This document shows positions 3,305 through 43,015 of a DNA stretch of 64,000 bases, one piece after another (the first letter of the stretch is position 1; every line of letters starts with the position of its first letter). Origin of the DNA: Haliotis rubra (lineage: Eukaryota); the NCBI RefSeq assembly GCF_003918875.1, contig NW_025767088.1:496001-560000 (forward strand). The letters run 5' to 3'. The position numbers were made by a program, and so were the translations under genes. A model generated the notes under the pieces. It saw only the letters and a list, made by a program, of their open reading frames with translations, ran no database searches and had not been told where the DNA came from.

Positions 3305-6046
3305 ATGGAGAAGCAATACTCTGTGCAGTTCTTTACATCCTTTATAGAGAAGCTTCAAGGATTGTGTAGAAATTCTCTAGACTTCAGTCAGACTGTGGAC
3401 GTCAGCGGCTATTTGTGTTTGGAGATCGACAACATGAAGAAAGAGAGATATGTCCTCAGTGAACTGTTACAGAGCAATGGGAATGTGGTCAGTGAGAGCT
3501 ATTGTACGAAGGCGTTCAAAACGTCACAGACTATAAATCCATCCCGACCTCGCCCGATGATTGGGAGGAATAATGTGAACGTTCCGACAAGCAGAGACAA
3601 TGTTCACCAGCATAATCAAAACAGAAGACGATCAAGGCCTGATTCCTCAGGTGCTCAGAATCCAAATATTCCATCAAAAGTTCGTAGATCAGTTGATGTC
3701 ATTGAAGTCATTGATGACGATCAGTCACCTGGGAGTATGAATTCATCAGGGAAGAGTTACCAGTCGAACCCGAAGCAAGGGCAGAGATGGCCTGCAGGCA
3801 GGGAGATGGCCAGCATGCAGAGACCCCCACAGAGCCAAGTAAAGAGATCCCCTGTAAGTCAGAACAGACAAAAGGATCAGTATAGTGCCATGATGAGACA
3901 GCAGGGACAATACGGTGCCATGGGTAAACCGCCAGATTCATATAACGCCACAATGAGGCAGCAGGAGCAAATGGCTCCCAGGAACAGGCTTCAGGAACAG
4001 TTGGGTAGTAGGAATAAACAGCAGGAACATTATGGTGCCATTAACAGACTACAGGAACAGTTTGGTGCCATTAGCAGACAGCAAGGACAGTTTGCTGCTA
4101 TGAACAGCCCCCAGGGGCAGTATAACGCCTTTAACAGACAGCAGCTTGGTGCCATGAACAACCAGCAAGGGCAACTTGGCGCCATCAACAGGCAGCAGGG
4201 ACAACTTGGCGCCATGAACAACCAGCAAGGACAACTTGGCACCATTAACAACCAACAGGGACAACTTGGTGCCATGAACAACCAAGGGCAGCTTGGTGCT
4301 TTGAACAGCCCTCAAGGGCAGCTTGGCGCATTGAACAGCCCTCAAGGGCAGCTTGGCGCATTGAACAGCCCTCAAGGGCAGCTTGGCGCTTTGAACAGCC
4401 CTCCAGGGCAGCTTGGCACTTTGAACAGCCCTCAGGGACAGCTTAGTACAATGAACAGGCAGCAGGGTCAGCTTGGCGCCATGAACAGCCAGCTGGGACA
4501 ATATAGTGCCATTAACAGACTGCAGGAACAATTTGGTGCCACAAATAGACAGCAGGGACAAGTGAACAGACCGAGATCTGATCCCATGGTACAGCAAGGG
4601 CAGCAGACAACTATGTCTATACCAGCAACAAGTCCCATGCAGCAACCCCTTATGCAGGATCCCAGAAGTACCAACGAAGGATTAAGAGCCCCGAACACCC
4701 AAAATGCAAATGTCCAAGGTAACATAGAACAGTTCAATGTTCAGAGACCACCACCTACTCCTCCTGTGTCTGCCAGTGATCATATTGTGAGGGTCAAGTC
4801 GGAGTTTGGTGCCAACGAGGGATTGAATACAAGTAATACCTCTACAGTTCCACCTCCAGCTCAAGCTTCAGCTTCAGCTCCTCCTCCTCCAGCTCCTGCT
4901 CCAGATCCAGCTCAGAAAGCTGGACAAAGTTCTGAAGCTGTCTCTCAGCCAGCTGGCTCAACTAACAACACAACACAAGCTGCAAGTTCACAATTAAGTA
5001 ATGAAGAACCATTGCTAGGAGCACCTGAAGAAGTGGCTGTGAGGATCAAACAGGAACCTATTGCCTACTCCCCTAAGCCAGTAGCAGGTTTGGATGAAGA
5101 TGGGGTTATTGATCTGGATTTGTTTGATGATGACCTGGATGACAATCATCCCGAGTCCTCTGCAGGAAGTGGTCAAGATGACCAGACAGCCTTGGCTAAG
5201 GACTATGGTGTACCTAACAAAACTGTCGCAAGGAAGGAAGATCAGTTCAACCTGGGATCCAAGAAAGTGGTAGATTATGCTGTCCAACAGTTCAAGAAGT
5301 ATCATTTCAGTAAATCCGGTTTAGATTTTGATATGTTGACTATGGAAACTGTGAAACTCGACAGCCTCTTGTTGGACTTCTTCCAGGGTGTGAGGAAGGG
5401 AAATGGTGAGGAGTTAACGGCAAGGACTTTGAAAAATGTGCAAATACACCTTGACATGTATTTAAGGGATAACAGATACCCATACTCAATTGAAAAAGAT
5501 GATGCCTTCAAAGCCTCAAGAGACTTTTTGAAGAACAAACTCGATCAAAGTAAGACTGGGAGACATATGCTGGTTCCAATTGATGACAATGAAATTGAAA
5601 TATTGTTCCAGAGACAGGTTCTTGGCGATCAGAATCCTGACTCTCTCATGAGCACAATGTGGTTCCTCAACTCCAAGTACCTCGGTATCAGACGTCCAGC
5701 AGATCACTACAACCTGCGATGGGGCGACATTCGGTTATGTACAGACGAAATGGGTATTGAATACCTCGAGCGTGTAATAAAGGGTTCATACTCTCTCAAA
5801 GTGTTCGCAAAGGCACAAACCCCATCTCGATGCTTTGTGAATTTGTATAAAAAATACTGGACCTTACGGCCTCAAGATGCTTTACTGGAATCTTCTCCAT
5901 TTTACCTGAACTTCAATGCAGGACCAAATTATCCACGTCCTGAACTTTGGTTCTTTAATGACTCCTTGTCTTGGTCGCGTTTTTCAAGTGAATGGAAGAA
6001 AATTCTCACAGCTGGTGGTCTGCCTCCGAATAAGAAACCTTGCTGA
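3305..6046 (+). CDS. Paralogue 1 (913 aa): conserved N-terminal domain, Q/G/N-rich 10-aa repeats, C-terminal Crypton/DUF3504-like (ZMYM/QRICH1/KCTD1-type) domain
   Basis: Uninterrupted ORF. The likely ATG is at 3305 (MEKQ, shared with the paralogues), after acceptor tttttctgttcctAG ending 3278; the ORF-track start at 3260 is a non-ATG codon in the intron. The C-terminal ~265 aa carry Crypton-type motifs LDSLLLDFFQGVRKGNGEEL..TL, F.ASRDFL..KL, MWFLNSKYLGIRR..DHYNLRWGDI, RCFVNLYKKY, PFYL and WF. Confidence 0.88.
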   Translation: MEKQYSVQFFTSFIEKLQGLCRNSLDFSQTVDVSGYLCLEIDNMKKERYVLSELLQSNGNVVSESYCTKAFKTSQTINPSRPRPMIGRNNVNVPTSRDNVHQHNQNRRRSRPDSSGAQNPNIPSKVRRSVDVIEVIDDDQSPGSMNSSGKSYQSNPKQGQRWPAGREMASMQRPPQSQVKRSPVSQNRQKDQYSAMMRQQGQYGAMGKPPDSYNATMRQQEQMAPRNRLQEQLGSRNKQQEHYGAINRLQEQFGAISRQQGQFAAMNSPQGQYNAFNRQQLGAMNNQQGQLGAINRQQGQLGAMNNQQGQLGTINNQQGQLGAMNNQGQLGALNSPQGQLGALNSPQGQLGALNSPQGQLGALNSPPGQLGTLNSPQGQLSTMNRQQGQLGAMNSQLGQYSAINRLQEQFGATNRQQGQVNRPRSDPMVQQGQQTTMSIPATSPMQQPLMQDPRSTNEGLRAPNTQNANVQGNIEQFNVQRPPPTPPVSASDHIVRVKSEFGANEGLNTSNTSTVPPPAQASASAPPPPAPAPDPAQKAGQSSEAVSQPAGSTNNTTQAASSQLSNEEPLLGAPEEVAVRIKQEPIAYSPKPVAGLDEDGVIDLDLFDDDLDDNHPESSAGSGQDDQTALAKDYGVPNKTVARKEDQFNLGSKKVVDYAVQQFKKYHFSKSGLDFDMLTMETVKLDSLLLDFFQGVRKGNGEELTARTLKNVQIHLDMYLRDNRYPYSIEKDDAFKASRDFLKNKLDQSKTGRHMLVPIDDNEIEILFQRQVLGDQNPDSLMSTMWFLNSKYLGIRRPADHYNLRWGDIRLCTDEMGIEYLERVIKGSYSLKVFAKAQTPSRCFVNLYKKYWTLRPQDALLESSPFYLNFNAGPNYPRPELWFFNDSLSWSRFSSEWKKILTAGGLPPNKKPC

Positions 6047-8782
6047 CCTTTAACTTGAGTGGGTTGGATGGATGTGCAGTGGTCATGTTAGGCTGGGCCA
6101 TTAATCTGTACTTACTTTAAAACTGTGGCCTAGGTGTCTAAGATACAGTTCTGCCCCAGAGGCAAGCCAGGTGTGGTCATAGGTTTGAATTCCAGATCAT
6201 TGTTGATTGTGTTTCAAACTACTACTCTCCAGGTTAGCTACCTCTGCTTATTCTTAATAACCAGTTTCAGATTTAACTTGCAATCAGCTTTTAGCCATGG
6301 AAATCTCACTATCCATCTTGAAGGAAATGTCCAGTCCTCATCTGTTGTTACCTGCTCTAATTTCTCTCCACTAGTAGTTTTTGGCATACGAAGTGGGCAG
6401 GGTTTCCGTGCACCAGAAGGGATGCATGTTGTACAGTTGAGATATTTTATACCTGTCAGTGACTTAAGGTAACTTTAATTACATTGTCATCGTAAAATTG
6501 TTACAGATGTTAGTTTGATTATGGATTTTCTGTGGTCATGTTGATCATTTTTATTTTATTTTTTTTATCAACTATGAGGGGTGAATAAATGTATTACTGT
6601 TGTAAATTTTCCGTAGCTAACCTGGCTAGGGACATTTCTGAATCTTTAGCCTTAACAAAACTTTGGTTGCCACGGGCTAGCAGACAAGCAGCTATTTTGC
6701 AAACTGCCTGTGCTTATGGGTTTCCAAAGTTGTTAACGACTTCGACCAATCATATGATACTGACAGTCACAGTCAAAAGAATGGTTCGGGAATTTGGATG
6801 TCAGGCAAAACACTTTATTCCATTTCAGACATGCCCCAATGCAACCGAAAAGTAAATTTTTGAAAATATTGATATAGTTAAAGGGATTTCAAAAACAAAA
6901 GCTAAAAAAATATTACCACATCTCCCTTTTTGATCGTATTGTAGAAGTATATTTTTAGATGTATTTCTTATACTGTATGTATTTCTGCTGTTTTCAGTAC
7001 TCAGCAGTTTATGCTAAGCCTGTCTCAGGTGTGAGAGGTTTGGATCATTCATTCTGCCAATGCTTGTTTAGTGAGTGATTGAGTGAGCCTAGCTTGATAG
7101 AGGGAATCCTTCAGTGATATCACAGCATATTGATGATATCAGCTTGACATTGAGCTGATGCAGGTTCCAAACAAATCCTACTTTTGGTGAAACCTGTCAG
7201 CACTGGTGCCAACAAACGAAGAAACAAAAGCAGGATGATTCTGGGATTTGAACCCACAATCCATTAGCACAGCGGGTTGCAGAGCTTGAGATAGCCTGGC
7301 CTCCAATACCCATCCTGACAGTCAAATTGTCATCGTGAATAGATCTGTGGTGGTGCCAAAGACTCTCATCATTACAATATTCTTAATATGTGCAAAAAGT
7401 CATCAACGAAACTCGCAAAACTGAATTTGGAAGAATATTATTAATTTGTATTATTTATAATATTTGTCTACAAGCATATTTATTGAGGGGGTATTATTGT
7501 GGTTCATTGAAATACAAGTACTTTTGTGTGTTGGGGTGGGGATTTTAATTTTTCAAATATTTAGCTCACCCTGAAAGATAAGTTAGTTTTACATTATTAG
7601 TGGATGTGCAATAACATTTGAAGAGAGTGCTCAACATTCATTGTCTTAGAATGACAGTGGTGTGGGGAAAAAAACAAGTTCTTATAAGAGTTTTTAAACA
7701 AAAATAACTTGTGTCAATGTTTTGTGTATGTGACCATATATAAATATACCTTCTTTCATTTAAACTGGACAAAAATGGAAAATGGAACATAATGAAAATT
7801 GAAAATATCCAACAGACTGAAGTTTCTTTGTTGATAATAGAAGGGATGGGCTTTGTGTTGCGTTGTCATGGTTACTGTGTTCTTTTCTTGTCTATGTTTT
7901 TTGTGTAAATGATCAAATGAGCAGACTGTAAAGTGATCATTGTTAAAATATTTTATTCATAAGATCGACTTTAATGATTTTCAGTTATGGAGGTATGTAT
8001 GGAAAGACAATGTGCATACTTTGTGTATAATATGTAGTATGCACATTGTTTTTTATGTTAATATCTTCGTAAATGCAGAAGTATTTTGAGGGGCGATTTC
8101 ATATACTAGTTCGGGTTCGATTCTCCACATGGGTACAATGTGTGAAGCCCATTTCTGGTGTCGCCTGCCTTGATGTTGATGGAATATTGCTAAAAGCAGG
8201 GTAAAGCTAAACTCACTCACTCAGAAGTATTTTGAAGTCAGCGTGGTCAGTTCTTAGATAAGCCTTAGGATTTAGAAAATTAAATCAGTATTGTTAACCT
8301 CAAAAGGGAAGAAGCAAACTTCCATAATTGCAGCTACTTATTATCTACCTCTTGGTGAAATGGCAGTGGTTTTCTTCTTGTCACACATTATTTCCACAGA
8401 GCACATTTGTGAGGTAGTTACACTTAAAACATACATTATGTCTTAGGATTAATGTTTTTGCGGAGTTGTCATTTAGAAACCATGTAAGACCTTTTATGTT
8501 TTGAAAGTGGTGTGAGGTGGCCGAGCGGTTAAAGTCTTTGCTTGTCACGCTACAGTCAGAATTTGATTCAATAAGGGTACAGTGTTTAAAGCCAACTTTT
8601 TTGCTTGGATGATTTTTGAGGAAATTGTTTTGTGTGATGTTGAAATTATTGTTATAGATGTGGAAATGTACTTTTATCACTGATCACTGTGTCAGGTGGT
8701 TGATTCAGTCGTAATGTTAGTTCACCAGTGCAAATTTCACTGTGTACAGATTTACACAGGAATACACTGAAAGTTATATTGC

Positions 8783-9152
8783 CATAATAATAATAATAAT
8801 AATTCATTTATATAGCGCCTTGTATCCATCTGACTAGTTGCTCACTGGACGCTGTAATCAGAATCTGATTTATTATTACCCCGGATAACCCATTCTGCCT
8901 GTTAGGCTCTAGAAGGTTATAGTTACATGACTTATCCTACCGGGTACCCATTTTCTGCTGGGTGAACAGAGGCAAATTTCAACAAACTCACTTGCCTAAG
9001 GTGAGAACACGTTGTGGGGCAGGAAACTCCAAGAAACTCTCAGGAGTCAGGCTGCCAAACACGGTCACCCATCCAATGACTCTCCGAGCTCGACGTTGCT
9101 TAACTTCAACTGATTCGTGGCCTGAGGTCTTCGCACAGGACCACACACCACC
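8783..9152 (-). mobile_element. SINE with 5S-rRNA-derived head segment, Deu/Nin-like core and L2-like (TTA)n tail
   Basis: The minus strand of 9062-9107 reads gaagttaagcaacgtcgagctcggagagtcattggatgggtgaccg, resembling the 5S internal control region. The core is gcctctgttcacccagcagaaaatgggtacc, and the tail is aggcgctatataaatgaat(tat)n. Confidence 0.7.
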
Positions 9153-9164
9153 ATGTGGAAAATA

Positions 9165-15182: not shown

Positions 15183-17140
15183 CTGGTTTATATCTTGTTA
15201 ACTTATCCTTCCAGGATGGTTTATATCTTGTTAACTTATCCTTCCAGGATGGTTTATATCTTGTTAACTTATCCTTCCAGGATGGTTTATATCTTGTTAA
15301 CTTATCCTTCCAGGATGGTTTATAACTTGTTAACTTATCCTTCCAGGATGGTTTATATCTTGTTAACTTATCCTTCCTTGTTAGGATGGTTTGTATCTTG
15401 TTAACTTATCCTTCCAGGATGGTTTATATCTTGTTAACTTATCCTTCCAGGATGGTTTATATCTTGTTAACTTATCCTTCCAGGATGGTTTATATCTTGT
15501 TAACTTATCCTTCCAGGATGGTTTATGTCTTGTTAACTTATCCTTCCAGGATGGTTTATATCTTGTTAACTTATCCTTCCAGGATGGTTTATATCTTGTT
15601 AACTTATCCTTCCAGGATGGTTTATATCTTGTTAACTTATCCTTCCAGGATGGTTTATATCTTGTTAACTTATCCTTCCAGGATGGTTTATATCTTGTTA
15701 ACTTATCCTTCCAGGATGGTTTATATCTTGTTAACTTATCCTTCCAGGATGGTTTATATCTTGTTAACTTATCCTTCCAGGATGGTTTATACTTATCCTT
15801 CCAGGATGGTTTGTATCTTGTTAACTTATCCTTCCAGGATGGTTTTATATCTTGTTAACTCTATCCTTCCAGGATGGTTTATATCTTGTTAACTTATCCT
15901 TCCAGGATGGTTTGTATCTCTTGTTAACTTATCCTTCCAGGATGGTTTATATCTTGTTAACTTATCCTTCCAGGATGGTTTATATCTTGTTAACTTATCC
16001 TTCCCTTCCAGGATGGTTTTATATCTTGTTAACTTATCCTCCCATCTTGTTAGCTTCCAGGATGGTTTGTCTTAGATCTTCCTTCCAGGATTTTATAACT
16101 TATCCCTCCCAGGATGGTTTATATCTTGTTAACTTATCCTTCCAGGATGGTTTATATATCTTGTTAACTTATCCTTCCAGGATGGTTTGTATCTTGTTAA
16201 CTTATCCTTGGTTTTATATATCCTTAGGATGGTTTATATCTTGTTAACTTATCCTTCCAGGATGGTTTATATCTTGTTAACTTATCCTTCCAGGATGGTT
16301 TATATCTTGTTAACTTATCCTTCCAGGATGGTTTATATCTTGTTAACTTATCCTTCCAGGGATGGTTTATATCTTGTTAACTTATCCTTCCAGGATGGTT
16401 TATATCTTGTTAACTTATCCTCCCAGGATGGTTTATATCTTGTTAACTTATCTTCCAGGATGGTTTATATCTTGTTAACTTATCCTTCCAGGATGGTTTA
16501 TCCTTCCTTGTTAACTTATCCTTCCAGGATGGTTTATATCTTGGTTTTAGGATGGTTTATATCTTGTTAACTTATCCTTCCAGGATGGTTTAACTTCCTT
16601 CAGGATGGTTTTATAATATCCTTCCAGGATGGTTTATATCTTGTTAACTTATCCTTCCAGGATGGTTTATATCTTGTTAACTTATCCTTCCAGGATGGTT
16701 TATATCTTGTTAACTTATCCTTCCAGGATGGTTTATATCTTGTTAACTTATCCTTCCAGGATGGTTTATATCTTGTTAACTTATCCTTCCAGGATGGTTT
16801 TATATCTTGTTAACTTATCCTTTTAGGATGGTTTATATCTTGTTAACTTATCCTTCCAGGATGGTTTATATCTTGTTAACTTATCCTTCCAGGATGGTTT
16901 ATATCTTGTTAACTTATCCTTCCAGGATGGTTTATGTCTCTTGTTAACTTATCCTTCCAGGATGGTTTATATCTTGTTAACTTATCCTTCCAGGATGGTT
17001 TATATCTTGTTAACTTATCCTTCTTATCCTTCAGGATGGTTTATGGTTGGTTTATATCTTGTTAACTTATCCTTCCAGGATTATATCTTGTTAACTTATC
17101 CTTCCAGGCTGGTTTATGTCTTGCTAACTTATCCTTCCAA
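15183..17140. repeat. 33-bp minisatellite (ggatggtttatatcttgttaacttatccttcca)n, ~2 kb
   Basis: Directly visible tandem array. Confidence 0.97.
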
Positions 17141-17830: not shown

Positions 17831-17861
17831 TGGCAGCTGAATTTTGGATTCATTGTAGTTT

Positions 17862-18278: not shown

Positions 18279-20150
18279 ATGGAAAAGCAAATCTCAGACC
18301 GGTTCTTCATCTCCTTTGTGGAGAGTATTCAAGATGTGTGTCGCAACTACCTCCAGTTCAGTCAGTTTGTTGAGGTCAGTGGCTATGTATGGGTGGAGAT
18401 CGACAATCTGAAGAAGGAGAGATATGTCCTCAGTGAACTGCTACAGAGCAGTGGTAATGTGGTCAGTGAGAGCTGCTGTATGAAGGCACTCCAGTCCACA
18501 AGGCTACCATCTCACACTACCAAGGTGAACCCAGGCCCAGCCGTTTCCTTCCAGACACAGAATACTCCATCAGCACCAGCACCAGTACCACCAGATGGTC
18601 ATGCCCAGTTCCACAGAGGGATGGAAGGCAGCTGTAGTAATGAGAAAAGACAGCATTCGTGGATTCAGGCATCTGATGGTCGTCCATGTGAGAAGATTAG
18701 GAGGCCGAGTGAAGTGATTGAGATCTGTGACAATGATGAAGCCCAATCATGGCCCGTCAAAAATGAAGTCCCATCAAGTCATTCTGAATTTTATGCAACC
18801 TCCTCACAGACACAGAACTTTAATGAAAGACCAGCAACATCCTCACATTATGCAAGAGGTAGCATCACTCCTGCGAGGCAAACAGTTGCTCCAAATGTCA
18901 CTGTTAGAAGGTACAGTGGTAGTGGTCAGATGAATGTTCAAGGTCCATCATCAACAGTGGCCAGCAACCAAGAATATTATCCAGATGACTCCATGACTGG
19001 GTCAGGTTTTGCTTCAGAAATCCAACAGTCTTATTTTGGAAGTCCACCAGATGGCAGTAATTACATGTCCCAGGAACCGGACCTCACAGCCAACCTCTTG
19101 ATGCCAGATACAGAGGACCTCCTCAACTTCCCCCAAGATTCTTCCAGGGATGACAAGAAGAGAGTGAAGCTGGAGGTGTTCAGTTCCTCATCCAGCACAA
19201 TAGACGATGATGAGATCATTGATCTGGATCTGTTTGAGGATGTCCTTGAGGACATTCAACCATCAACCGAATATCAAGACTCAGGTGAATTTCAAGACGC
19301 AACTTCGCCTGGGTCTAAGTCTGATGAAAGTGCAGGTAGAAAGCAATGTGCAATAAGCCCGGGATCTGCACAGGTTATTAAATCTGCTGTTAAGCAATTC
19401 CAAAGATACTGCCTTGAGAAGTATGACCGGGAAATAAATATGTTTTCTTTATCACACAACCAGCTTGACGCTGTGCTCTTGGATTTCTTCAAAGGGGCAA
19501 GAAAGAAGAGGGAAGGGGAGTTTTCTTCCCGTTCTCTCAAGAATGTACAGATCCATTTAGACATGTATCTAAGGGATGGTGGTTATCCATATTCTATATC
19601 AAAAGATGAAGAGTTTCAGTCGTCAAGAGATTTCATCAAGTCCAAGCTTGATGAGATGGGGAAATATGTGAAAAGTCACAAGCATGTTCCTGTTGATGAT
19701 TCCGATATTGAACAATTGTTTCGAACGAGTCAGTTTGGTGTACATTGTCCGGAAGCCATTGTGAATTCAATGTGGTTCTTAAACTCAAAGTATTTTGCTG
19801 TAAGACGTCCGCTGGATCATTTCAACATGAAGTGGGGTGACATTTCTCTGAAAACAAGCAATGATGGAAGGCAGTATGTAGAACGTAGAATAAATGATAC
19901 CTTTTCTCTCAAGGTTTTTGCCAAACCACAGTGTCCAAACAGATGTTTTGTCAACATCTACAAACAGTACTTTTACAGAAGACCCCAAGAGACTTTGGAT
20001 ATGGAATCTCCATTTTACCTATCCTTTTGTAGAAGAGCCACATCTGATTTGTGGTTTGTGACGGAACAGATGACCTGGTCTCGAATTGCAGGCATGTGGC
20101 GAAAACTGGTCTTGGCAGCTGGTCTGTCTACAAACAAAAAGATAATGTGA
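18279..20150 (+). CDS. Paralogue 2 (623 aa): conserved N-terminal domain plus Crypton/DUF3504-like domain
   Basis: Open ORF with GCC-ATG-G context, after acceptor ttttcttctttcAG ending 18258. It aligns by eye with 3305-6046 at both ends (LKNVQIHLDMYLRD, MWFLNSKY, SLKVFAK.Q.P.RCFVN.YK.Y, ESPFYL/ESSPFYL, GL..NKK). Confidence 0.88.
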   Translation: MEKQISDRFFISFVESIQDVCRNYLQFSQFVEVSGYVWVEIDNLKKERYVLSELLQSSGNVVSESCCMKALQSTRLPSHTTKVNPGPAVSFQTQNTPSAPAPVPPDGHAQFHRGMEGSCSNEKRQHSWIQASDGRPCEKIRRPSEVIEICDNDEAQSWPVKNEVPSSHSEFYATSSQTQNFNERPATSSHYARGSITPARQTVAPNVTVRRYSGSGQMNVQGPSSTVASNQEYYPDDSMTGSGFASEIQQSYFGSPPDGSNYMSQEPDLTANLLMPDTEDLLNFPQDSSRDDKKRVKLEVFSSSSSTIDDDEIIDLDLFEDVLEDIQPSTEYQDSGEFQDATSPGSKSDESAGRKQCAISPGSAQVIKSAVKQFQRYCLEKYDREINMFSLSHNQLDAVLLDFFKGARKKREGEFSSRSLKNVQIHLDMYLRDGGYPYSISKDEEFQSSRDFIKSKLDEMGKYVKSHKHVPVDDSDIEQLFRTSQFGVHCPEAIVNSMWFLNSKYFAVRRPLDHFNMKWGDISLKTSNDGRQYVERRINDTFSLKVFAKPQCPNRCFVNIYKQYFYRRPQETLDMESPFYLSFCRRATSDLWFVTEQMTWSRIAGMWRKLVLAAGLSTNKKIM

Positions 20151-20805: not shown

Positions 20806-20837
<32 letters not shown>

Positions 20838-30500: not shown

Positions 30501-32841
30501 CTATACGACACCTACGATCCCAAAGAGAAGCATTAGTAAGGGCAAAATCAGGGGCAGATAATCCTCATACACTGGTGTGTCCTCCCACTGCACATCCAGC
30601 TCTGCCTGACACAGACAGCGGATGCCGGCCACGTGGGGAGCTTCTGTTGGTGATTGGGATCTGTGAGGAGCAAAGTCTGTGGATGAGGCTTCCGGGGTGG
30701 CAAAGTGGCACTCATGGCTTTGTCGAGTATCAGGTGCCCTTGTTGCAACATCAGATGTCTCCTCAGAAATGTCAAAAGAGGACGAGCTCTCAGGAGTAGC
30801 AAAGTGGTATTCGTGGCTTAGTCCGGAATCAAATATCCTTGTTGCAACAATAGATGTTTCCTCTGGAATTTCAGTAGAGGACGAGCTCTCAGGAGTAGCA
30901 AAGCGGCACTCATGTAAGACATCGGATTTCGTTGATCCAACACTTGAGATCTTCTTAACAACCTCGACAGAGGACGAGCATCCAGGAGTGGCAAAGCGGC
31001 ACTCATGACCTTGTCCAGCATCGTATATCCTTGGAACATCAAAGGTCATCTCATCAACTTCAGTACAGGACGAGTTCTCAGGAGTAGCAAACTTGCACGC
31101 CCTGCTTTGTCCAGCATCAGATTTCATTGATGCAACAACAGATATCTCCTCTGCAACTTCACTAGAGAACGAGCTCTCAGGAGTAGCAAAGTGGCACTCA
31201 TAGCTTTGTCTAACACAATGTTTCCTTGGAACATCAAAGGTCGTCTGAACAACCTCAGCAGAGGTCGCGCTCTCATGAGCAGAAAAGTGGCACTTGTGGC
31301 AGTGTCCATTGACACATTTCCTTGTTGCTGAGGTCTTCTCAGCAACTTCAGTAGTGATGGAACTATCATCTAGACTTTGACTTTCTGTCTCTAACATCTG
31401 GTTACAGCACGGAGGAGAGGTCATGTTGACTGCTGTGTCATGCCTGTGTTGGATGTGTCCACGAGTAGAAACTGAAGTGTCTTCAGATCCTAGGCCTATT
31501 GTTGGGGATCTGGGACAAGGACTTCTAGAAGCGGATGCAATCTTGCATTGCCTTTCTGTGGGAAGAACAGCTGGTGCTCCCAGCAACTCATCGTTCTCTC
31601 TGTTAGTGGATTTCATGTTTGATGGAGATACTTTGGCACTCCGTGTCATCACTTTGCTGTCCGTAGGTGTACATACATCTGATAAAGCACCATTGACTTC
31701 ATCTTTACCAGGACCTGGAGGCGAGTACTTGTCGACTGGTGTGTTAACTCTGAGTATAGACCTGGGAGGTTCTTCCTGTGATTCCTCATCAATGGAGTCA
31801 AGGTAGCCGTGTGATGGCACGATCACGGTGGGGAACAGGACCTCCCTTGTGTACTCCTCCTGCAACAGCTGGTTTACAGTCCAGAGAGTAGGTCTCACGG
31901 CAGGATCCTCAGCCATACACATGTCAGAAACTGTCAACAAGGTTGAGATGTGGGAGACGCCATGGATCTTCTTCAGGACTCTGCCAAGACTGAATATATC
32001 ACATGCAGCGGTTGTCTCAGCGTGAGCACAGGCCTCTGGGGCTAGATGTACACAATTCTTCATGTCCCCTCTGTAGGTTACCCCTGATTTGTAAGATGCT
32101 GATCCCATGTCACAGAATTTGACCAAAGGCAATGTCCCAGACATGTCCACAAGTATATTGTCTGACTTCAGGTCATTGATGAGAACGTCTTTCTTGTGGA
32201 TTTTATTCAGACCACTGGTTATCTGACACACAATATTCAGCCAGTGTAATCCTGTCACTCTTGAATCGCACAACACGTCATAAAGTGTTAATCCGGTACC
32301 AACATACTCCATCACGATGTTGTAGCCATCCTCCTCGTCACTCAATAGTCCGTAACAGATAGGGACGCAGCCTGTGGACTCAAGGTACATGGTGATCTTT
32401 GCCTCATTAGCGATGGACTCCTGTGTTGTCCGGTTTGAAAAGTGTTCTTTAACCACCACGTCTCTACTCTGGCCAGGAGACACCGTTAACGTTGCTGCAT
32501 ATACTTTCCCAAATGACCCAGTGCCGATGATTATTTCCGTGAGACCATCTGATTCCAATTTGTAGTCGACTATATCAGAAGGAAGAGTTGGAATCTTGAT
32601 GTGTCTAAAATCTGAAGACACGCAAAAGGAAGGTCCACACACCCTCTTGAAGACGTACTCAGAAGGGAAGGGTTCATGGCTGGCTGGCTTGTCCTCATCG
32701 TGGTGTAAGGCGGTGGCAGAAGTGATAGCATGATCACTGTGGTAGGCTTGTCCGAGAGAGGCTCGAGAGGGAGACAGGGTGCTCAAGGTAGGAATGTCTA
32801 GGACGTCATCCTCGTGCAGGAAAGAACGTGGAGACTCAGCC
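30501..32841 (-). CDS. Kinase gene coding exon 2: divergent Ser/Thr-type protein kinase domain, ~7 FATP repeats, hydrophobic C-terminal tail (joined protein ~1094 aa)
   Basis: Acceptor tatttatgtttcAG|G at 32842/32841. Motifs are GTGSFGKV, VVVK, alphaC E (ANEAK), INDLKSDNIL, DMG, HLAPE, DIFSLG and RPT. The protein ends YLPLILPLLMLLFGIVGVV*. Confidence 0.85.
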
Positions 32842-33189
32842 CTGAAACATAAATACAACATAAAAATGTGACCAACCCCTGCCTGATTCATACATATCAA
32901 ACGTCAATGGGAGAGAACAATACATTTTGATTATTCCATGGACATACAACAACAACATTATATGAACGGATGACTAAAAATTAGTAATGACACGCTTGCG
33001 ATTAGTTCTTGGATGGCAAATTGTCACAAAACAAACAGGATAATAAGAAGAAATGGAACAACTACAATAGGGCTATTGCCCTCGGCTCGTAATAACGTTT
33101 AACGAACATCGGAACACACTTAAGGTGTGCCTGAAGCTTAGGACCCCTCGTTTAGTCGGAAATCGTAATTAAAGAGTCAAACCATCCAA

Positions 33190-33620: not shown

Positions 33621-33624
33621 TTAC

Positions 33625-34568
33625 CTTGTATACCTGTTCCTTCCTGTGCAGGAAAGGTCCTTTATCTGGCTGTTCAGGCAACTTTGCACTGGTGTCTGCT
33701 CCTCGGAAGACCCGTAGCATCCGGTAATGTCCGTCACCTCCGTCACGGCGCTGTGAAACGGCTGACATCCAGCAAGACAGGGTCGTGGGTGGTTTGGTCC
33801 AGCAGGATCACATAGCAGACTTGACCATGCACACCCACCACTCTGGTAGCCTCCATCGAGAAGCGGGGTGCACAAGAGCAGGAGCAGACCATCCTTCACA
33901 GACTCTGGAACCTCTGAGACAGACTTAACCAGAGATACTTCTTCGAACAGGTCGCTAAAATATGGCGGGCCGCACTGGTGTTCTGTTTGAACGGAAACAT
34001 CAGACGTTGCATGGGCGTCCTGGTTCCCAGATTCGATCTCATCGATGTCCTCAAGTGAAGGCAGCTGTGTTTTTTGACATCTTGGTAAGACCTCAGTGTC
34101 TTCTCTCCTTTTCTTATTTGGTCGCGATATGCCTTGAACCGCACCGTTTGCTATATTCTCTAAGCCTGCACACGTGTTATCGAATTTGATTAAGCAGCGT
34201 GTTTGCCCTTCACCACGTGTTCTATGGACTTCTGGGTGACGTCTGTTCAGATAGCTGTGCCGTGGCTTCTGTCTTGTGCTCGCCAGAACTTTGGACAATC
34301 CTTGGTATGACTTGGATCCAGCGATGGCCGCGGCAGTTTCGACATTAGAGTCAGCTTCCTTGGAATTACCGTTGTTGTTACTGTTCAGGAAGGCTGTCGC
34401 ATTAAACTGGACACTTCTAGTGACGACAAACACATGCTGTGAGAATCCATGAGATCTGTCTCTTGTTCTTGTGATGAAGGATTCAATAGCTGAAGTCCTG
34501 TATATAGTACCTGGTGCTCCAACTTGACTTTTATCAGTCGTGCTACAAGGCTCGATGACCCCCGCCAT
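33625..34568 (-). CDS. Kinase gene coding exon 1 (944 nt, uncharacterised N-terminal region)
   Basis: ATG at 34568 in aaaATGG context, open 315-aa frame, donor AAG|GTAATG at 33625/33624. Its phase 2 matches the acceptor of the kinase exon (AG|G = Arg). Confidence 0.7.
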
Positions 34569-36119: not shown

Positions 36120-36188
36120 TACATAACGTGAGGTCACGCGTGCGTTGAGCTTCCGGAAAGGCTTTTTCACCTTGAAAACAGGGTAGGC
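36120..36188 (+). promoter_or_regulatory. Candidate promoter / non-coding first exon for paralogue 3, divergent from the kinase gene
   Basis: CpG-rich GGTCACGCGTGCG, an ETS-like CTTCCGGAA site, then a possible donor GG|GTAGGC at 36183. Confidence 0.3.
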
Positions 36189-36688
36189 TCACAAATCTGC
36201 TCATACATAATGTCACCGTTTCTGTTTGACACTTAACTGTTTGTTATATACATTTGACGAACTGTGTGAGGTTGGACTGTCATTTGGGGAAACTGTCTCA
36301 CAATGGGGTACAACTTCAAGGCATGATTTGGACGTTTGTTGACTTGCGTGCCAGTCACATGACACGTGCGAGACACCGATCAGATACGAAAACTGTTTTA
36401 TTAATTCTACATGGTTATCAATCGTGTCAACAGTATTCCAGATGTGGGATAATTAATATATGACATACGTCTCATATAGCCATTGATTTGAGCAAAACTA
36501 CATTTTAACTAGGTTATTCCTACAAAGCTACAATTTCACCAATGCTAGGTCTAACAACCTAACAACTGACAGTGCTAAGTTTTGACAATAATAAGATATC
36601 ACTTGGAGACTTTGATCAAAAAGAGATGTTTTCGTTGTTTTATTCTATTAATTTCATTTCTGACCAGATATTTTTAAAAGTCTTCCAC

Positions 36689-36915
36689 CAGTGTATAAAA
36701 TAAGGCCCGACCGAGACGGGTTAGATTTCAGACGGACGGTCTGCAGATTTACAGCTAGCCAACCCGATGGTCTGGAAAAAAATTGAGATGTTAGATCTAT
36801 ATACATCTGAGTCATATCTTGGTGTCTGGTCTGGTTAAATCCATTTTGGACTGGTAACGTTTTGAAGTTACCAGCCCTGATGTCTGGCTGGGGTTTGGGC
36901 TTATTTCATACACTG
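36689..36915. mobile_element. Second copy of the 7-bp-TSD MITE
   Basis: Same TIRs and body as 702-917; flanks are CTTCCAC / CTTCAAC. Confidence 0.85.
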
Positions 36916-38197
36916 CTTCAACATGTCATCTTGGTGACCATATGATAAAATATATACGTCATATGGTCTCTGGTCATCAGTATCTGGTAAATCCATATGC
37001 ATTTAGGAAAATCAGTATTTCAGATTAAAAATATGCTACCTCCCAGCAAGTGATCATGATAATACAAAGGTATATTAGAGTAAGTAACCAGGCTTCTCTG
37101 AGAGCTGTTTTTGGGGCAGACTCTCAAGGCATGACCCTTCATATACTCATCAGAAATTTGATTTATGAAGCTGAAATACTGGACTATTTAAAAATATGAA
37201 CATTCTCTTTTATCATGATTATATTCAAGATGGAATGGGTAGAGAAAATTCTCATTTCTGTGGTTCCTTGCAGTTATGTGACAGTATATTTGATTCCATA
37301 TCCTACTGAGAATGTCTTTGTAATGCAAAGTTTAATGTCAGATTCTAAACATGGCCCCCATGACAGCCATATTGAAATTTAGAAATCATCCATTTTTGCT
37401 CAAGTTTAGTAAAATGTTCACAATTAAGTGAACAGATGATCTTAAAATGTTATATGTTGAATATTATATTAGCACTGTTGTATGTTTCCGTCAGCACCAT
37501 GGAATCTGATGATTGTCACAAATCCCATGAGAATCCGCTCATGATTTGGTACGTAGTTACTATACAAAGGGATGAATATTCTGCATGTCTTGGAATTAAA
37601 ATCTAACTTGGATGATCGACAGGACTGAGGTTCCTGGACCTGTGTCATGTGAGAATAATGTTCCATGTTTGTGACATCTGAGAGCTGCATCACTGACCCA
37701 TTAAGATCCAGGTTAGAATTGATCTTCAGTAAGCCATGCTTGTCGTAAGAGGTGATTAACGGGATTGGGTGGTCAGGCCCGCTGACTTGGTCATTGCATC
37801 CCATTTGCTTAGATCGATGCTCATGCTTTTGATCACTGGACTGTCTGGTATGTCTGGTCCAGATTTGATTATTTACAGACCACTGCCATATTGCTGGAAT
37901 ATTAATGAGTGTGGAGTAAACTAAACTCACTCACACACTCACTCACTATTTTTAACTGCAGCCATAATGCTAAGACAAAAAGACATTTAGAATGAGAATA
38001 ACAAGAATTCTCAATACTTAGAACTACACCTTTTTTACTTGTCAATTATTGATGTACACCTGTATATCATATCAGCTATTTACAGGCTGATTAAAGCATT
38101 TGCTTGTCACGCTGAAGACCCAGGTTCGTTCCCCACAATGGGTACAATGTGTGAAGCCCATTCCTGGTATCCCCCTACTGTGATATTGCTGGAATAA

Positions 38198-38633
38198 TGT
38201 AATCGTATATATTTTCATGGGTGCAATATTCGCGGAAAGTTCACAAAAGACCTGTTAGCGCAGTTGTTTTTTCGTGCATTTCAATCATTTGAGTGATAGT
38301 ATCCATCATAGAGTTTTCACAGCCGATCAACATGACAACACCTGTCCCATATGCGAGATCAACTGACAACGAATTAAGGAAGAGTGTACACTAGGACTTA
38401 TGATAATTAAACATAGAAATCATAAAGTAGTATTTGTTGTTTATGAACACGTGTTGTTCACATGGTCAAATCGTTGATTGGCTGCATTTCATGTCTTTGT
38501 TTCAATTGCATGTTGTTCCAACTTGAGTATTTGTCATGACCATGAATATTTCGCTTGGTATGATTATTGATGCACGATCTTTTTGCGCTAAAAGCGCGAA
38601 AATTAATCCCACGCGAAAAAAACTATGATTACA
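38198..38633. mobile_element. MITE inserted into a family A SINE tail
   Basis: tgtaatcgta.at.ttttc..ggg...cccacgcgaaaaaaactatgattaca; the SINE tail resumes at ~38637. Confidence 0.6.
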
Positions 38634-40192
38634 ATATAGCTAAAATCGGCGTGGTAAAACCCAACTCACTCATCCAAACTCAGTCCTGGTGACATGTTAT
38701 TTTGTTTGTTTGCTGGTGAACGCCACACTCAGCATGTTGCAGCGGCCTTTACATTTTCAAATCTGGACCAGACAATCCACTGATTAACTGCGTGAGCAGT
38801 GATGAACACATTTGGGATACGATGAAGTGTCCACCACGTTAGCAATCAGCAACCCCTCTTATGACAAGCATGGGTTGCTGAAGACCGATTCTACCCCGAA
38901 TCCTCACGGGTGTGGAACATGCTTTGTGAGGATCTGTGGTGTGAAGCTTCCAGGTGTTAATGCTGAGTGGGGGGCAATGGGGGGTAGCCTAGTGGTTACA
39001 GCTTATGCTTGTCACACTGGAGACCCGGGTTCAATTCCCCACATGGGTACAATGTGTGAAGCCCATTTCTGGTGTACCCTGCCGTGATATTGCTGGAATA
39101 TTGCTAAGGCCAGACCAATTTTATTTCTTGTTTTACGGATTTTTGTCCTCAGAAAACCTAAATTTCCTAAAATACAATAATCTGGAGGGAACTGCTACAA
39201 ACAATATTCGAGTGAGTATGGTTTTACGCCGCTTTCAGCAATATTCCAGCAATATCACTGCTGGGGAACACCACAAATGGGCTTCACACATTGTACCCAT
39301 GTGGGGAATCGAACCCGGGTCTTTGGAGTGATGAGTGAACACTTTAACCACTAGGCCCCCCTGCAAATGATACATATGTATTGAGTTCTGACATCTCTGT
39401 CCTCATCACAAAGATGTCTCTGTGAGCATGTAGCTCAGGAAATAGCATATCGATGAATCAGTATGAAGTACATAAGGTAATCAATCTCCTACACCATCTG
39501 GTTATTAAATTTATTAGTTGTATATCTGGGCTGTTTGGATCGACTGTTTTTGTTTGTTCAAGATTTCATTCAGTATTATTTCCATTAATTTTGGTGAAAT
39601 TAGTATTTGAACTAAATTGCAGATCACACCATTTCAGTGGTTTTCAAAAAGGAAATAAAAGACAATTAATCCTCTCAACACAATTTTTATAAAGTATTAA
39701 GAAAAAAAATTGAATACTCAAATTGTATTTTGATTGCAACCACTGACAAAAGGTTTCTGGAAATATGATCCATAAGATCAAAGCAGTAATGGCAGAAAGG
39801 TCTTACTTAAGTGAGACCCATGAAGTAATAAGATTGTTGGCGCGAAACATTAATCGTTCTGGATCAGTGTCCCCTGAAGTCAACTCTGGCTTCAGTGTCC
39901 TCTCTTATCAAACATACCTGTGAAGGTCCTGGTTAGAATATTGATCTTCAGTAACCCATGCTTGTCGTAAGAGGCGACTAACAGCATCGGGTGGACTGGC
40001 TCGCTGACTTGGTTTACACGTCATCATATCCCAATTGCGTAGATCGATGCGCATGATCTTGATCAATGGATTGTCTGGTCCAGACTCGATTATTTACAGA
40101 CCGCCACAACAAACCAACAACAACTACTGAAGTGATGTTTATCATGTTTAATGTGCTTTCTCTTCCAGAAAAGGGAAAAGGAATAGCTTCAA

Positions 40193-43015
40193 ATGGAGAA
40201 ACAGCATTCGGTAAAGTTCTTCGAATCCTTTGTGAGAGATATTCACAAGGAATGCCAGAACTTTGTGTGCTTTGACCAGATGGTGGAGGTGAGTGGGTAC
40301 TTGTGTCTGGAGATCGACAACGTCAAGAAGGAGAGGTATTTGTTGAGTGAACTCATCCAAAGCTCAGGCAGCGTCATCAGCGAGCGCTTTTGCACCAAGG
40401 TGTTTCGGAACTGCCCAACTCAACGGCCATCAGCACAGAGGGGAAATGGTAAGAGAAACATGACACCCCCAAACCCAGCTTTGAACCAGAACAGACCTGG
40501 ACAGGGTGGGATAATCCGACAACAAAATATGTTGCAACAAAATACGCGTACCCATCTGAGCAGAGCAGGGCAAAGTCAACAGATGCAACGAACTTCTCAG
40601 GCTACCAGAAGTGGACAAAATGTTCCTAGTCATGTTCAGATGAACCCAAGAGTGCAAGGATTTCATATGAACCAACATCCACAAGCAAGTCCAGTTACAA
40701 GTAAGGGAGCAGGAACCATACAAGACAGACAAAGGCATAATTCTGTCAGCATTCCTTTAATGAACAGGCAAAGTAACAGCCAGGTGGTGATTGCAAAAAA
40801 TCCTAACAAACTTTCTTTTAATCAAAGATTAGACCAAGCAGTAAACTCACAATCTGATGACACTCAGAAGACAAAGGACATCAATCAAGGTGTGAATCAG
40901 CAAGGTCAAGGTCAATATGCAAAGCAGTTTAATCAATGTCAAGGTGTGAACCTGCAAGGTCAGGGTCAATACACAAATCATCAAGGTCAATGTGTCAACC
41001 AGCAAGGTCAAGGTCAATACAGAAGCCATGAAGGTCAATGTGTTAACCAAGTTGAAGGCTTCCAGGTTAAAGAAGGAAGGAATCAGACCAATGTACAGGA
41101 TCCTAACCTTGCAAATTTGTATGGTCAGAATGTGTTTCCTCAAGCTGTTCCTCAAAGCAGTGTGCTAGACAAGAGTAAGACAGCTGGAGCTGTTCATGCC
41201 ATCATTAAACAAGAGGAAGATCAAACTTGTAAAGAAGTTTATCAAACAGCTTCTATTAACTGTAATCAGCGAAACATCCATGACATGAAGCCAACTATTC
41301 ACAGTTCTGCTTTCACTGATCAAGACGGGGTTGGTGAAGTTAAAGGTGGCAATATTGACCGAGCACCCAGAACACCTTGTGACAGTTTACAACAAAAGGG
41401 TAGTAAAATATATGTCCAAGAAATTCCCCAGGCAGCTCAAACCTCAACTCAGGCCAGCAGAGTAACTTCAAGAAGAAGAAGCATTAACACGGGGCATGTT
41501 GGACAAAATCCAAGCTTAACAAACCAACAAGCCCGGCGCTTCAGTGCCCCAGTCCCAGATCAGGCTTTCCTTCAGCAAAGAGAAACCCCTAACCAAGGTG
41601 TTGAACAAACCAATCCAGTTCAAACTCTAGAAAAGGCTACACATCCATTAAAGTGGCAAGTTATTGAAGTGGAGCCTGAAGTATCAGTGGTTTCTGTGAC
41701 CCCAGGTGTGTCTGCTGTAACTTTGTCCACGAAGCCTCTATCAGAACCTGGCTGCAAGGACCACCCTCTCCAAAAGGATCCAGCTGCAATGAATCAAAAC
41801 AATCCTCCTCAGTTCATAAATCAAGGACCTGTAGCTCGGGCACAAGTCATGAATGTCACGGGATCATATAGCACAGGTCATGCACAAAAGATGCCTCAGA
41901 CCCAAAATGTGAATCCTGCACAAATGTTGAAAACAGAGGCACCACCAACTCTGTCTCCTGTGGACAGCATTAACTTTGCAGAGTCATGTCAAAAACACCA
42001 ACCATTTATATCTGTGCCACCTTGCGTCATTAACTCACAGTCACTGTCTCAGGAAGCCCAGCCAGCAGTGTCTAATTTGAAGAATACAAAGTTACAATCA
42101 GGTTACGAAAAACCAAGGTCAGAACCTTTTCCACAGTCATCAAATCAACCACCCAAACTACCTGTATGCACCACACAAGACGTATATCTGAGAGTATGTG
42201 CACTGAAACCTTCAAAGTCTGGTCCAAGTTCCAAGAATCTTCTTCAGTCATCAAATCAAGACCACAGACCCCCTGTTCTGATGCGAGAAAGGGAACCACC
42301 AGTCTTAGATCTCACAGAGTCCTCAAATGTAAACCCAAGACCACCCACACATTTCAACTCAAATCCCCACCCTCAAGCCCTTCACAAGAATATTGAGGGA
42401 CGACAGATGTATAACTCTCCTACACTATCACCACAAACTCAAGGAGATGTATCAGGTCCATTGTCATCAGATTCATTTGAGACCACTGCCAGGAGACCTT
42501 CATATCTTCAGGAATCTTCCTTCTTGAGTTCATCGCTGACCTCAACGGCTCATAATGAAGCTGACAGACAGCAGATAAAAATGAAACCATCCTTGAGTCA
42601 ACAGCCGGTGGCATCATCAACCGAACCCGTAACATCAGACTGGAAAACTTCCACAAGTCCGCCAATGGATCCCAATCCAAAAGCATCAGCTGTACCTGTT
42701 AAGAAAGCAAAGCTGAGCTTAGAACCAACTCCAGAAGACACTTCAATCTTGATGTCCAAGCAAACTAAACCAGCAGGCAAGAAAGGAAGAGAGACATCTG
42801 CCAAAAAACAAGTGAAGAAAGGAAGGCGAAAGTCCACAAAGCCAAAGAAGGTTGATGTGAATGATGTGACAAGTGATGAGGATAACTATGAGGTGTCAGC
42901 AGGTCCAGTCCCCAGGAGGAATCTGCGCAGCGCCCAGAGGACAGGGCGGCAGGTATACAGGGAGGAGGACCCTGACCTCAGTGACAGCAGTGTACCTGGA
43001 GACAACTGTCCTTAG
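40193..43015 (+). CDS. Paralogue 3 (940 aa): same N-terminal domain, long Q/P/S-rich disordered region, basic NLS-like tail, no DUF3504-like domain
   Basis: 2.8-kb open ORF starting MEKQHSVKFFESF...VSGYLCLEIDNVKKERYLLSEL. Acceptor ctttctcttccAG ends at 40168. KKQVKKGRRKSTKPKK lies near the C-terminus. Confidence 0.85.
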   Translation: MEKQHSVKFFESFVRDIHKECQNFVCFDQMVEVSGYLCLEIDNVKKERYLLSELIQSSGSVISERFCTKVFRNCPTQRPSAQRGNGKRNMTPPNPALNQNRPGQGGIIRQQNMLQQNTRTHLSRAGQSQQMQRTSQATRSGQNVPSHVQMNPRVQGFHMNQHPQASPVTSKGAGTIQDRQRHNSVSIPLMNRQSNSQVVIAKNPNKLSFNQRLDQAVNSQSDDTQKTKDINQGVNQQGQGQYAKQFNQCQGVNLQGQGQYTNHQGQCVNQQGQGQYRSHEGQCVNQVEGFQVKEGRNQTNVQDPNLANLYGQNVFPQAVPQSSVLDKSKTAGAVHAIIKQEEDQTCKEVYQTASINCNQRNIHDMKPTIHSSAFTDQDGVGEVKGGNIDRAPRTPCDSLQQKGSKIYVQEIPQAAQTSTQASRVTSRRRSINTGHVGQNPSLTNQQARRFSAPVPDQAFLQQRETPNQGVEQTNPVQTLEKATHPLKWQVIEVEPEVSVVSVTPGVSAVTLSTKPLSEPGCKDHPLQKDPAAMNQNNPPQFINQGPVARAQVMNVTGSYSTGHAQKMPQTQNVNPAQMLKTEAPPTLSPVDSINFAESCQKHQPFISVPPCVINSQSLSQEAQPAVSNLKNTKLQSGYEKPRSEPFPQSSNQPPKLPVCTTQDVYLRVCALKPSKSGPSSKNLLQSSNQDHRPPVLMREREPPVLDLTESSNVNPRPPTHFNSNPHPQALHKNIEGRQMYNSPTLSPQTQGDVSGPLSSDSFETTARRPSYLQESSFLSSSLTSTAHNEADRQQIKMKPSLSQQPVASSTEPVTSDWKTSTSPPMDPNPKASAVPVKKAKLSLEPTPEDTSILMSKQTKPAGKKGRETSAKKQVKKGRRKSTKPKKVDVNDVTSDEDNYEVSAGPVPRRNLRSAQRTGRQVYREEDPDLSDSSVPGDNCP

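Follow-up and report, generated by a model that had tools for sequence, protein, structure and literature searches.

A probable family of mollusc nuclear regulators that joins a constant N-terminal domain to variable modules, here a dead Crypton recombinase

We analyzed a 64,000-nucleotide stretch of the genome of the abalone Haliotis rubra (contig NW_025767088.1, positions 496,001 to 560,000; hereafter the window), which carries three related genes designated paralogues 1, 2 and 3 (P1, P2 and P3). These are host genes under purifying selection, not live transposons, and we judge it quite probable that they belong to a mollusc-restricted family of nuclear regulators in which a constant N-terminal domain (the N-domain) heads a variable C-terminal module, here a dead Crypton recombinase. 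In this family, a long disordered linker would connect the N-domain head to C2H2, psq, CENP-B/Tc5 helix-turn-helix (HTH), piggyBac-type finger or captured Crypton recombinase modules. The recombinase would have been captured once or a few times, before the gastropod-bivalve split, from a Crypton lineage still plentiful in abalone, where the fused gene would then have expanded into tandem clusters ahead of the divergence of the sampled Haliotis species. By analogy with BTB, ZAD or SCAN domains, the N-domain may mediate self- or hetero-association or recruit a common cofactor. The dead recombinase would bind DNA or a partner, by analogy with the DUF3504 domain of human QRICH1, which binds SEPHS1 (PDB 9HJT; bioRxiv 10.64898/2026.10.26.761783); for this reason, binding to a protein is no less likely than binding to DNA. 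P3, which has the N-domain but not the recombinase, could take part in the same complexes or titrate them.

All three genes are intact open reading frames (ORFs) on the + strand. P1 (3305..6046) is a single ORF of 913 amino acids counted from its MEKQ start and features the N-domain (3305..3520, residues 1-72), a Q-rich disordered linker and a dead Crypton recombinase domain (5225..6043, residues 641-913), the remnant of a tyrosine recombinase without box II and without the catalytic tyrosine. Its linker contains a 30-bp coding tandem repeat of about 12 copies (4141..4561, + strand, Tandem Repeats Finder), which translates to Gln/Gly-rich decapeptide units. P2 (18279..20150), a single ORF of 623 amino acids, has the same type of architecture with a shorter linker: the N-domain (18279..18494, residues 1-72), whose sequence was used for structure modelling, and a dead Crypton recombinase (19344..20147, residues 356-623) composed of a QRICH1-like N-part and DUF3504. 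P3 (40193..43015), a single ORF of 940 amino acids without DUF3504, combines the N-domain (40193..40408, residues 1-72) with a long, fast-evolving linker and a Lys/Arg-rich C-terminal tail (42668..43012, residues 826-940) that is conserved above the level of the linker. The N-domains of P1 and P3 were identified from alignments of the paralogues.

There are exactly three occurrences of the sequence ATGGARAARCAR in the window, one at each gene start, for a chance expectation of 0.21. Residues 1-72 of the three proteins align without gaps at 54-67% identity, and their invariant columns match letter for letter the pattern on which a previous sequence-only reading of this DNA had grouped three intact, same-strand ORFs. 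Past residue 72, the sequences split into unlike low-complexity linkers, and P1 and P2 then realign in their C-terminal parts over about 305 residues (45% identity, E 3e-91). This reconvergence had also been pointed out, and ascribed to a Crypton/DUF3504-like domain that was expected to match the corresponding profile; both proteins do match Pfam DUF3504 (PF12012), with 54 bits for P1 and 55.9 bits for P2 and a cut-off of 29.7. In P1, the DUF3504 match spans residues 765-901 and is accompanied by a weak match to the Pfam QRICH1 domain at residues 669-745; P2 also matches the latter weakly. P3 ends instead in a basic tail, as had been described: a Pfam search yielded no match anywhere in this protein, tail included, and relatives of its tail and linker were seen only among P3 orthologues. 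Pfam detected no zf-FCS (MYM) finger in P1-P3. The exact product of P1 is present among NCBI proteins.

Tyrosine recombinases harbor a box II, with an HxxR motif, and a catalytic tyrosine. Because P1 and P2 end before HxxR, the histidine, the second arginine and the tyrosine are gone, and their C-domain, to judge from its sequence, is unable to recombine DNA. What the captured domain keeps, on the same basis, is the QRICH1-like part and the first catalytic half, including the box I Arg region. A genome scan for DUF3504 gave at least 151 scored matches among 648 candidates, many of them interrupted by stop codons, and 30 loci were fetched. Against these loci, a profile built on the C-domains of the family found three (L047, L059 and L061) with E-values from 1e-50 to 1e-56, the remainder lying around 1e-20. 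These three loci run on where the family proteins stop, with TNHSARK, about 25 residues and then GHK...Y. L059 (C2099:23693-25318) encodes a 542-amino-acid ORF matching both DUF3504 and Phage_integrase in Pfam, with a weak QRICH1-domain match as well. The C-domain of P2 shares 30% identity with it across 247 residues (E 5e-35), colinearly from the QRICH1-like N-part to the end of DUF3504, and the alignment stops at residue 398 of L059 (...AAGLSTNKKI versus ...AAGLSSDRKL), two residues short of NHSARK. When four Crypton tails were compared by tblastn with the window and with 20 family loci, no catalytic tail (E < 0.05) was detected downstream of family members. A degenerate box II persists in basal members, namely TNLSAHK in Solemya, ANTSAHK in Sinanodonta and YTNSSIQM in an H. 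rubra gene on contig C1112.

The L059 lineage is large, multicopy and diverse, with copies at 99, 95 and 69% identity besides many decayed ones (at least 80 scored matches out of 1770 candidates). L047, L059 and L061 (the latter at C2678:2007808-2009097) retain the full box II and the tyrosine, have 99% identical copies on different contigs and are surrounded by dozens of diverged or decayed relatives; this lineage looks recently active. The N-termini of L059-type Cryptons consist of a small strand-rich region unrelated to the N-domain. We also observed a second multicopy DUF3504 group on six contigs (L055, L058, L060, L062, L064 and L066), whose ORFs all end at one point before box II; five of the six loci go on with '...GKI', usually '...GKIFKFIYLK'. 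This group may represent a truncated Crypton derivative or another domesticated set.

Orthologues of the window genes were found in H. asinina, H. cracherodii, H. rufescens and Gigantopelta. P2 shares 87% identity with its orthologue in H. asinina and 77% with that in H. cracherodii, and the P3 orthologues in H. rufescens and H. cracherodii are colinear proteins of 957 amino acids. In H. asinina, the orthologues of P1 (889 amino acids) and P2 (621 amino acids) are ordered and oriented as in the window, and a kinase gene comes after them on the other strand. H. rufescens also has this kinase gene, with the 957-amino-acid orthologue of P3 next to it; both arrangements agree with the order of the window, that is P1, P2, a kinase ORF (30501-32900, - strand) and P3. 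Ratios of non-synonymous to synonymous substitution rates (dN/dS), computed for orthologue pairs by the Nei-Gojobori method, amount in the N-domain to 0.015 for P1, whose N-domain is 99% identical in the H. asinina orthologue, 0.064 for P2 and 0.059 for P3 (versus H. rufescens), and in the C-domain to 0.084 for P1 and 0.104 for P2. Linkers range from 0.20 to 0.53 across genes, and whole-gene values are 0.14 for P1 and 0.20 for P2. The P3 tail is more constrained than the P3 linker (75% versus 59% identity; dN/dS 0.36 versus 0.53).

The similarity among P1, P2 and P3 at the DNA level begins at the ATG and is confined to the two domains, and their flanks have nothing in common beyond short interspersed repeats. 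In a maximum-likelihood tree of C-domains, H. rubra paralogues have one-to-one orthologues in other abalone on branches of 0.03-0.1, with a paralogue-to-paralogue separation of 0.5-1.3, which places the expansion before the split of the sampled Haliotis species. Paralogues are 45-80% identical versus 87-95% for orthologues. We conclude that the three genes are host genes because synteny is kept, dN/dS is low and the catalytic half is missing, which bears out the sequence-only reading in its view of domesticated rather than mobile ORFs. Among the features by which that reading would have recognized transposons, the multicopy state does apply, but the genes are neither non-syntenic nor neutrally evolving, since gene order is kept and the genes are under purifying selection.

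A profile built from the three N-domains was searched against 1.84 billion representative proteins and returned 133 matches with E < 1e-3, nearly all starting from residue 1. All the matches with a traceable source are from molluscs, including gastropods (Haliotis, Gigantopelta, Batillaria, Lymnaea, Littorina, Patella, Plakobranchus, Lottia, Nucella, Pomacea and Babylonia) and bivalves (Solemya, Sinanodonta and Potamilus). The N-domain corresponds to no Pfam family in P1-P3 or in 111 carriers, with no CARD match either; PDB sequence searches with N-domain profiles gave chance-level hits only, and a protein-atlas feature search produced no usable match. In the 87-sequence alignment, G35, D42 and E53 are invariant and F9, C21 and F27 are conserved at 90% or more; with just one conserved cysteine, the domain is not a zinc module. 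AlphaFold2 modelling of the P2 N-domain from this alignment reached a predicted local distance difference test (pLDDT) score of 80, and above 90 at residues 11-40, and predicts a long helix (residues 2-24) packed against a sheet of three long antiparallel strands (30-41, 45-56 and 61-68). Strand 1 bears hydrophobic residues on both faces, a sequence pattern that would fit burial by a partner. A single-sequence AlphaFold2 run of full-length P2 was uninformative (pLDDT 36). Four mollusc-only clusters of the ESM Atlas match this N-domain model with TM-scores of 0.79-0.82 and a root mean square deviation of 2 Å, so that two independent predictors agree on the fold; two of these clusters are zinc-finger proteins named 'isoform X25' and 'isoform X9'.

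The Foldseek search on residues 1-72 suggested by the sequence-only reading revealed no informative structural relative: its PDB hits (best E 0.18; TFIIA gamma, NurA and cystatin) display a generic helix-plus-sheet resemblance, and the best VIA-align hits (Z 5.0, pseudopilins) a generic helix-on-sheet likeness, neither of which we regard as homology. With no Pfam match, no PDB sequence match and these structural scores, the N-domain was also rejected as a homologue of BTB, ZAD or SCAN. The earlier suggestion of a BTB/SCAN-like module thus holds for the role, which fits the architectures and the isoform-swapping loci described below, and fails for the fold, which is predicted to be neither BTB- nor SCAN-like.

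Among the 111 N-domain carriers, the partners identified by Pfam are C2H2 fingers (21), DUF3504 (7), psq (6), zf-Tnp_2, a piggyBac-type finger (3), CENP-B_N (2) and the Tc5 HTH (1); BTB was not among the families listed for these carriers. At five loci in five species, annotated isoforms have an identical N-terminal prefix followed by unlike C-terminal cassettes. The shared prefix measures 312 amino acids in Gigantopelta LOC121382984, 356 in H. rufescens LOC124111699, 323-324 in Pomacea LOC112564035, where isoform labels go up to X28, 297 in a single Littorina gene (tag V1264_013589) and 343 in Babylonia LOC143293889. The QRICH1-domain match of the Gigantopelta family protein has a Pfam E-value of 4e-5. 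Two kinds of cassette without a Pfam match were observed in addition. In two Pomacea proteins (P0191 and P0099) and one from Babylonia (P0184), the cassettes are Arg/Lys-rich and helical ('...EERxxLEREKSRxRM...ARRKERE...') and may constitute a further DNA-binding type. In isoform X2 of H. rufescens LOC124111699 (P0034), a cassette of about 150 amino acids (residues ~357-506) takes the place of the zinc fingers of isoform X1.

Searched in six frames, the H. rubra genome (1.38 Gb, 2855 contigs) yielded 23 N-domain matches, 21 clear and two weak. The clear copies are 51-82% identical to the P1 N-domain, P1 itself being counted; 13 of them lie on the contig of the window, between 453 and 741 kb, and the others form small clusters on four further contigs. 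The sequence-only reading had seen an isolated trio, a view that gives way here to a family of about 20 members in abalone. Based on the extracted ORFs, the genome-wide DUF3504 scan and the C-domain profile of the family, about 16 of the 21 copies are joined to DUF3504, either within one ORF or through an exon 1-6 kb downstream. Two copies end inside the QRICH1-like part, and three are without DUF3504: P3, a 195-amino-acid exon and the orthologue of a zinc-finger gene. The nearest paralogue of the P3 N-domain (68% identity) belongs to a two-exon gene on contig C2386, and the alignment runs on to residue 133, which suggests that P3 descends from a copy of only the first exon of a two-exon member. 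Contig C2198 carries two N-domain exons of 102 and 195 amino acids, 2.4 kb apart (487852-488073 and 490297-490515, both on the - strand; L022 and L025), upstream of a single DUF3504 exon (486410-486790). This arrangement may reflect alternative first exons or, instead, a gene beside a truncated copy.

The C-domains of the family and the Cryptons L047, L059 and L061 form one clade (SH-aLRT 100), distinct from two further DUF3504 groups present in this genome; the comparison with Crypton recombinases that had been proposed from the sequence thus places the family, among the genome's own elements, with this lineage. Monophyly of the N-domain-linked C-domains was not rejected (p-AU 0.375), which is consistent with a single capture. 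The only MYM (zf-FCS) fingers of the genome occur on contig C2267, in a WOC/ZMYM-type gene on the - strand (2763201-2764507 and 2786370-2787059; L067 and L075) with four zf-FCS about 22 kb upstream of a multi-exon DUF3504. A 71-amino-acid stretch of one of these DUF3504 exons scores 72.7 bits against human QRICH1 (PDB 9hjt), versus 31.5 bits (E 9e-7) for the whole P2 C-domain (273 amino acids) and 37.7 bits for the Crypton L059. From these scores, the C2267 gene is the WOC-type orthologue, and the likeness of the family to QRICH1 is no greater than that of any Crypton. Since the true WOC/ZMYM gene sits elsewhere and the C-domain is nearest to Cryptons of the same genome, sequence comparison supports a capture separate from the WOC/ZMYM/QRICH1 event.

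The same fusion is present in Gigantopelta and in the bivalves Solemya velum, Sinanodonta woodiana and Potamilus streckersoni, whose N-domains are 63-69% identical to those of abalone. Because three bivalves carry it, the fusion is not specific to abalone and predates the gastropod-bivalve split; no member turned up in oyster, mussel or scallop with searches that were word-based or relied on a narrow profile. The independent, lineage-specific domestication put forward by the sequence-only reading is therefore upheld in its independence, given the separate WOC gene and the Crypton clade, and not in a restriction to abalone. Family proteins are named 'uncharacterized', 'QRICH1-like' or 'ZMYM2-like/QRICH1 C-terminal domain-containing' in databases. 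Literature searches on Crypton domestication, DUF3504 and mollusc transposon-derived transcription factors returned no mention of the family or of the N-domain, and hence no earlier description of this architecture, whose existence would have told against the reading.

Rather than an association module, the N-domain could be a DNA- or RNA-binding domain, a degron or a localisation signal, its pairing with DNA-binding domains being incidental; the absence of an informative structural match, a dimer prediction that gave no answer and the possibility that the invariant acidic and glycine residues G35, D42 and E53 form a ligand site are all compatible with this. We nevertheless find it very unlikely, as acidic invariants suit nucleic-acid binding poorly and the domain invariably occupies the extreme N-terminus and, at cassette-swapping loci, is always the part that stays constant, a signature of BTB/ZAD/SCAN-type heads. 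A different role altogether would be transposon control, whereby the truncated recombinase recognises Crypton ends or recombinase subunits and blocks transposition, the expansion of the family tracking Crypton load. Truncated transposases do block transposition in the case of P elements and Tn5. The nearest relatives of the family are an abundant Crypton lineage with intact, 99% identical copies on different contigs of the same genome, the truncation takes away the catalytic half only, and the roughly 16 genes in tandem clusters include paralogues strongly diverged, down to 45% identity. However, a C-domain dN/dS of 0.08-0.10 reflects ordinary purifying selection and gives no hint of an arms race, the fusion goes back beyond the divergence of gastropods and bivalves and thus long precedes the Crypton copies seen today, the N-domain also heads zinc-finger and HTH proteins without any Crypton link, and the one DUF3504 with a reported partner binds a protein, SEPHS1. 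A role of this kind hence appears unlikely, although less so than an unrelated function of the N-domain.

Two further alternatives concern what the genes are. They could be plain mollusc QRICH1 orthologues issued from the ancient WOC/ZMYM/QRICH1 domestication, with a layout inherited rather than convergent: NCBI labels some orthologues 'transcriptional regulator QRICH1-like', Pfam QRICH1-domain matches exist, albeit weak, QRICH1 is the only PDB sequence match below E 0.01, and the overall layout of P1 resembles QRICH1. Yet an intact Crypton matches QRICH1 no worse than the family does, the separate MYM-finger gene has a far closer DUF3504 exon, the family groups with Cryptons and its basal members retain box II remnants. 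In addition, the N-domain is predicted to be alpha+beta, as opposed to the small helical fold described for the QRICH1 N-terminus, and QRICH1 itself has been derived from WOC in early vertebrates (PMC3212892), so that we give this orthology very little credence. That the ORFs are still transposon genes, as non-autonomous or recently active Crypton derivatives that look intact, is scarcely credible. The family is indeed multicopy and clustered in a genome rich in Cryptons, and three of its loci (L021, L026 and L037) are truncated or frameshifted; against this stand the loss of the histidine, second arginine and tyrosine, the gene order kept in three species, strong purifying selection, the lack of common flanks or termini, and paralogues that are far less similar to each other than orthologues are.

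Several points limit our own interpretation of P1, P2 and P3 as members of a family of nuclear regulators. We infer the self-association of the N-domain by analogy, and DNA binding by the dead recombinase and a nuclear location are likewise putative, as are the roles that the sequence-only reading assigned to P1 and P2 (DNA/chromatin-binding subunits) and to P3 (a decoy or adaptor). The homodimer prediction for the N-domain, run without an alignment, did not fold the chain confidently and weighs neither way on binding. The isoform evidence consists of automated RefSeq models from other species. The C-domain tree left out vertebrate DUF3504 genes and Repbase Cryptons and sampled 30 of at least 648 DUF3504 candidates, and its deep nodes form a polytomy with long branches. 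The exact ORFs of P2 and P3 are absent from the protein collection. Finally, the P3 region was found in no public run recorded as RNA, and the orthologues are represented by RefSeq models only. Four public runs of unrecorded kind contain P3, with its ORF intact, free of indels and about 2% divergent; they appear to be DNA of a ~2% divergent individual or of a close relative, because a unique flank (39701-39900) is covered to much the same depth as the ORF and because the contigs end at a high-copy repeat and at a 21-bp tandem array.

Beyond the three genes, the window contains a kinase gene between P2 and P3 (30501-32900, - strand, with 33621-34568, - strand, upstream; Pfam Pkinase E 5e-22). 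It includes a 99-bp coding tandem repeat (30700-31294) of about six 'HECxFATPESSSS'-like units and has a hydrophobic C-terminal end. Two tandem arrays, a 33-bp unit repeated 59 times (15184-17139) and a 21-bp unit repeated 93.5 times that starts 200 bp past the stop codon of P3 (43214-45183), both give long spurious ORFs. A short interspersed repeat at 39931-40105 and 45213-45274, with summed contig depths in the millions in the four public runs, is probably a SINE-like element, and related pieces of 40-110 bp occur near P1 (8112-8224) and P2 (22202-22285).

Four independent domestications of Cryptons were proposed by Kojima and Jurka in 2011 (PMC3212892), those of KCTD1 and KIAA1958 being vertebrate-only and QRICH1 being derived from WOC in early vertebrates. 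The mollusc family would be a fifth, mollusc-wide case beside the four proposed for animals. Unusually, this genome still contains intact members of the likely donor lineage, and with intermediates whose box II has decayed, the steps of domestication could be read directly. The unnamed and strongly constrained N-domain appears to organise a class of mollusc transcription-factor genes, including lola-like loci with many isoforms, and thereby offers a concrete target for expression, structure and oligomerisation work. To our knowledge, the architecture of regulatory proteins in Lophotrochozoa has been almost unstudied.

The family resembles the Crypton-derived DUF3504 genes KCTD1b, KIAA1958, WOC/ZMYM2-4 and QRICH1 (PMC3212892) in having a Crypton recombinase in a conserved host gene, with loss of the histidine, second arginine and tyrosine and fusion to regulatory domains; P1 shares with QRICH1 the layout of a small N-terminal domain, a disordered Q-rich stretch and then DUF3504. 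It differs from them by its unnamed N-domain partner, in place of MYM fingers, BTB or CARD, by its restriction to molluscs and by its 16-20 or so copies in abalone. Whereas those genes carry a mutated box II, P1 and P2 stop outright before it, and basal mollusc members keep a degenerate remnant. The N-terminus of QRICH1 is small and helical (CARD-type), while the mollusc N-domain is predicted, at a pLDDT of 80, as a helix with three strands. Active Cryptons such as L059 (542 amino acids) continue with NHSARK...GHK...Y, are multicopy with 93-100% identical and many decayed copies, and are devoid of the N-domain.

In Drosophila, lola and mod(mdg4) encode TTK-type BTB heads with alternative C-terminal DNA-binding exons. 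The RefSeq models of the mollusc loci are similar in that a constant head and linker are spliced to many C-terminal DNA-binding cassettes per locus. The mollusc head, however, is not a BTB and has no sequence or fold similarity to it, and P1, P2 and P3 are single-ORF genes. TTK-type BTB domains are reported to be arthropod-specific (PMC11426971). We tentatively entertain, as a possibility we would not yet call probable, that the N-domain is a new fold family and the mollusc counterpart of this arthropod module, a multimerising head that would link dozens of isoforms and paralogues, including the ~16 dead Crypton recombinases of abalone, into combinatorial chromatin-organising complexes, with members that lack a DNA-binding end, such as P3, acting as modulators. 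ZAD in insects and SCAN and KRAB in vertebrates are lineage-specific N-terminal modules of transcription-factor families. The N-domain is comparable to them as a short, strongly conserved and clade-restricted head associated with DNA-binding domains and expanded in tandem clusters. It is distinguished by a different predicted fold, by a single conserved cysteine, unlike the ZAD zinc module, and by partners that include transposon-derived modules (dead recombinase, piggyBac finger and CENP-B/Tc5 HTH) and not C2H2 fingers alone.

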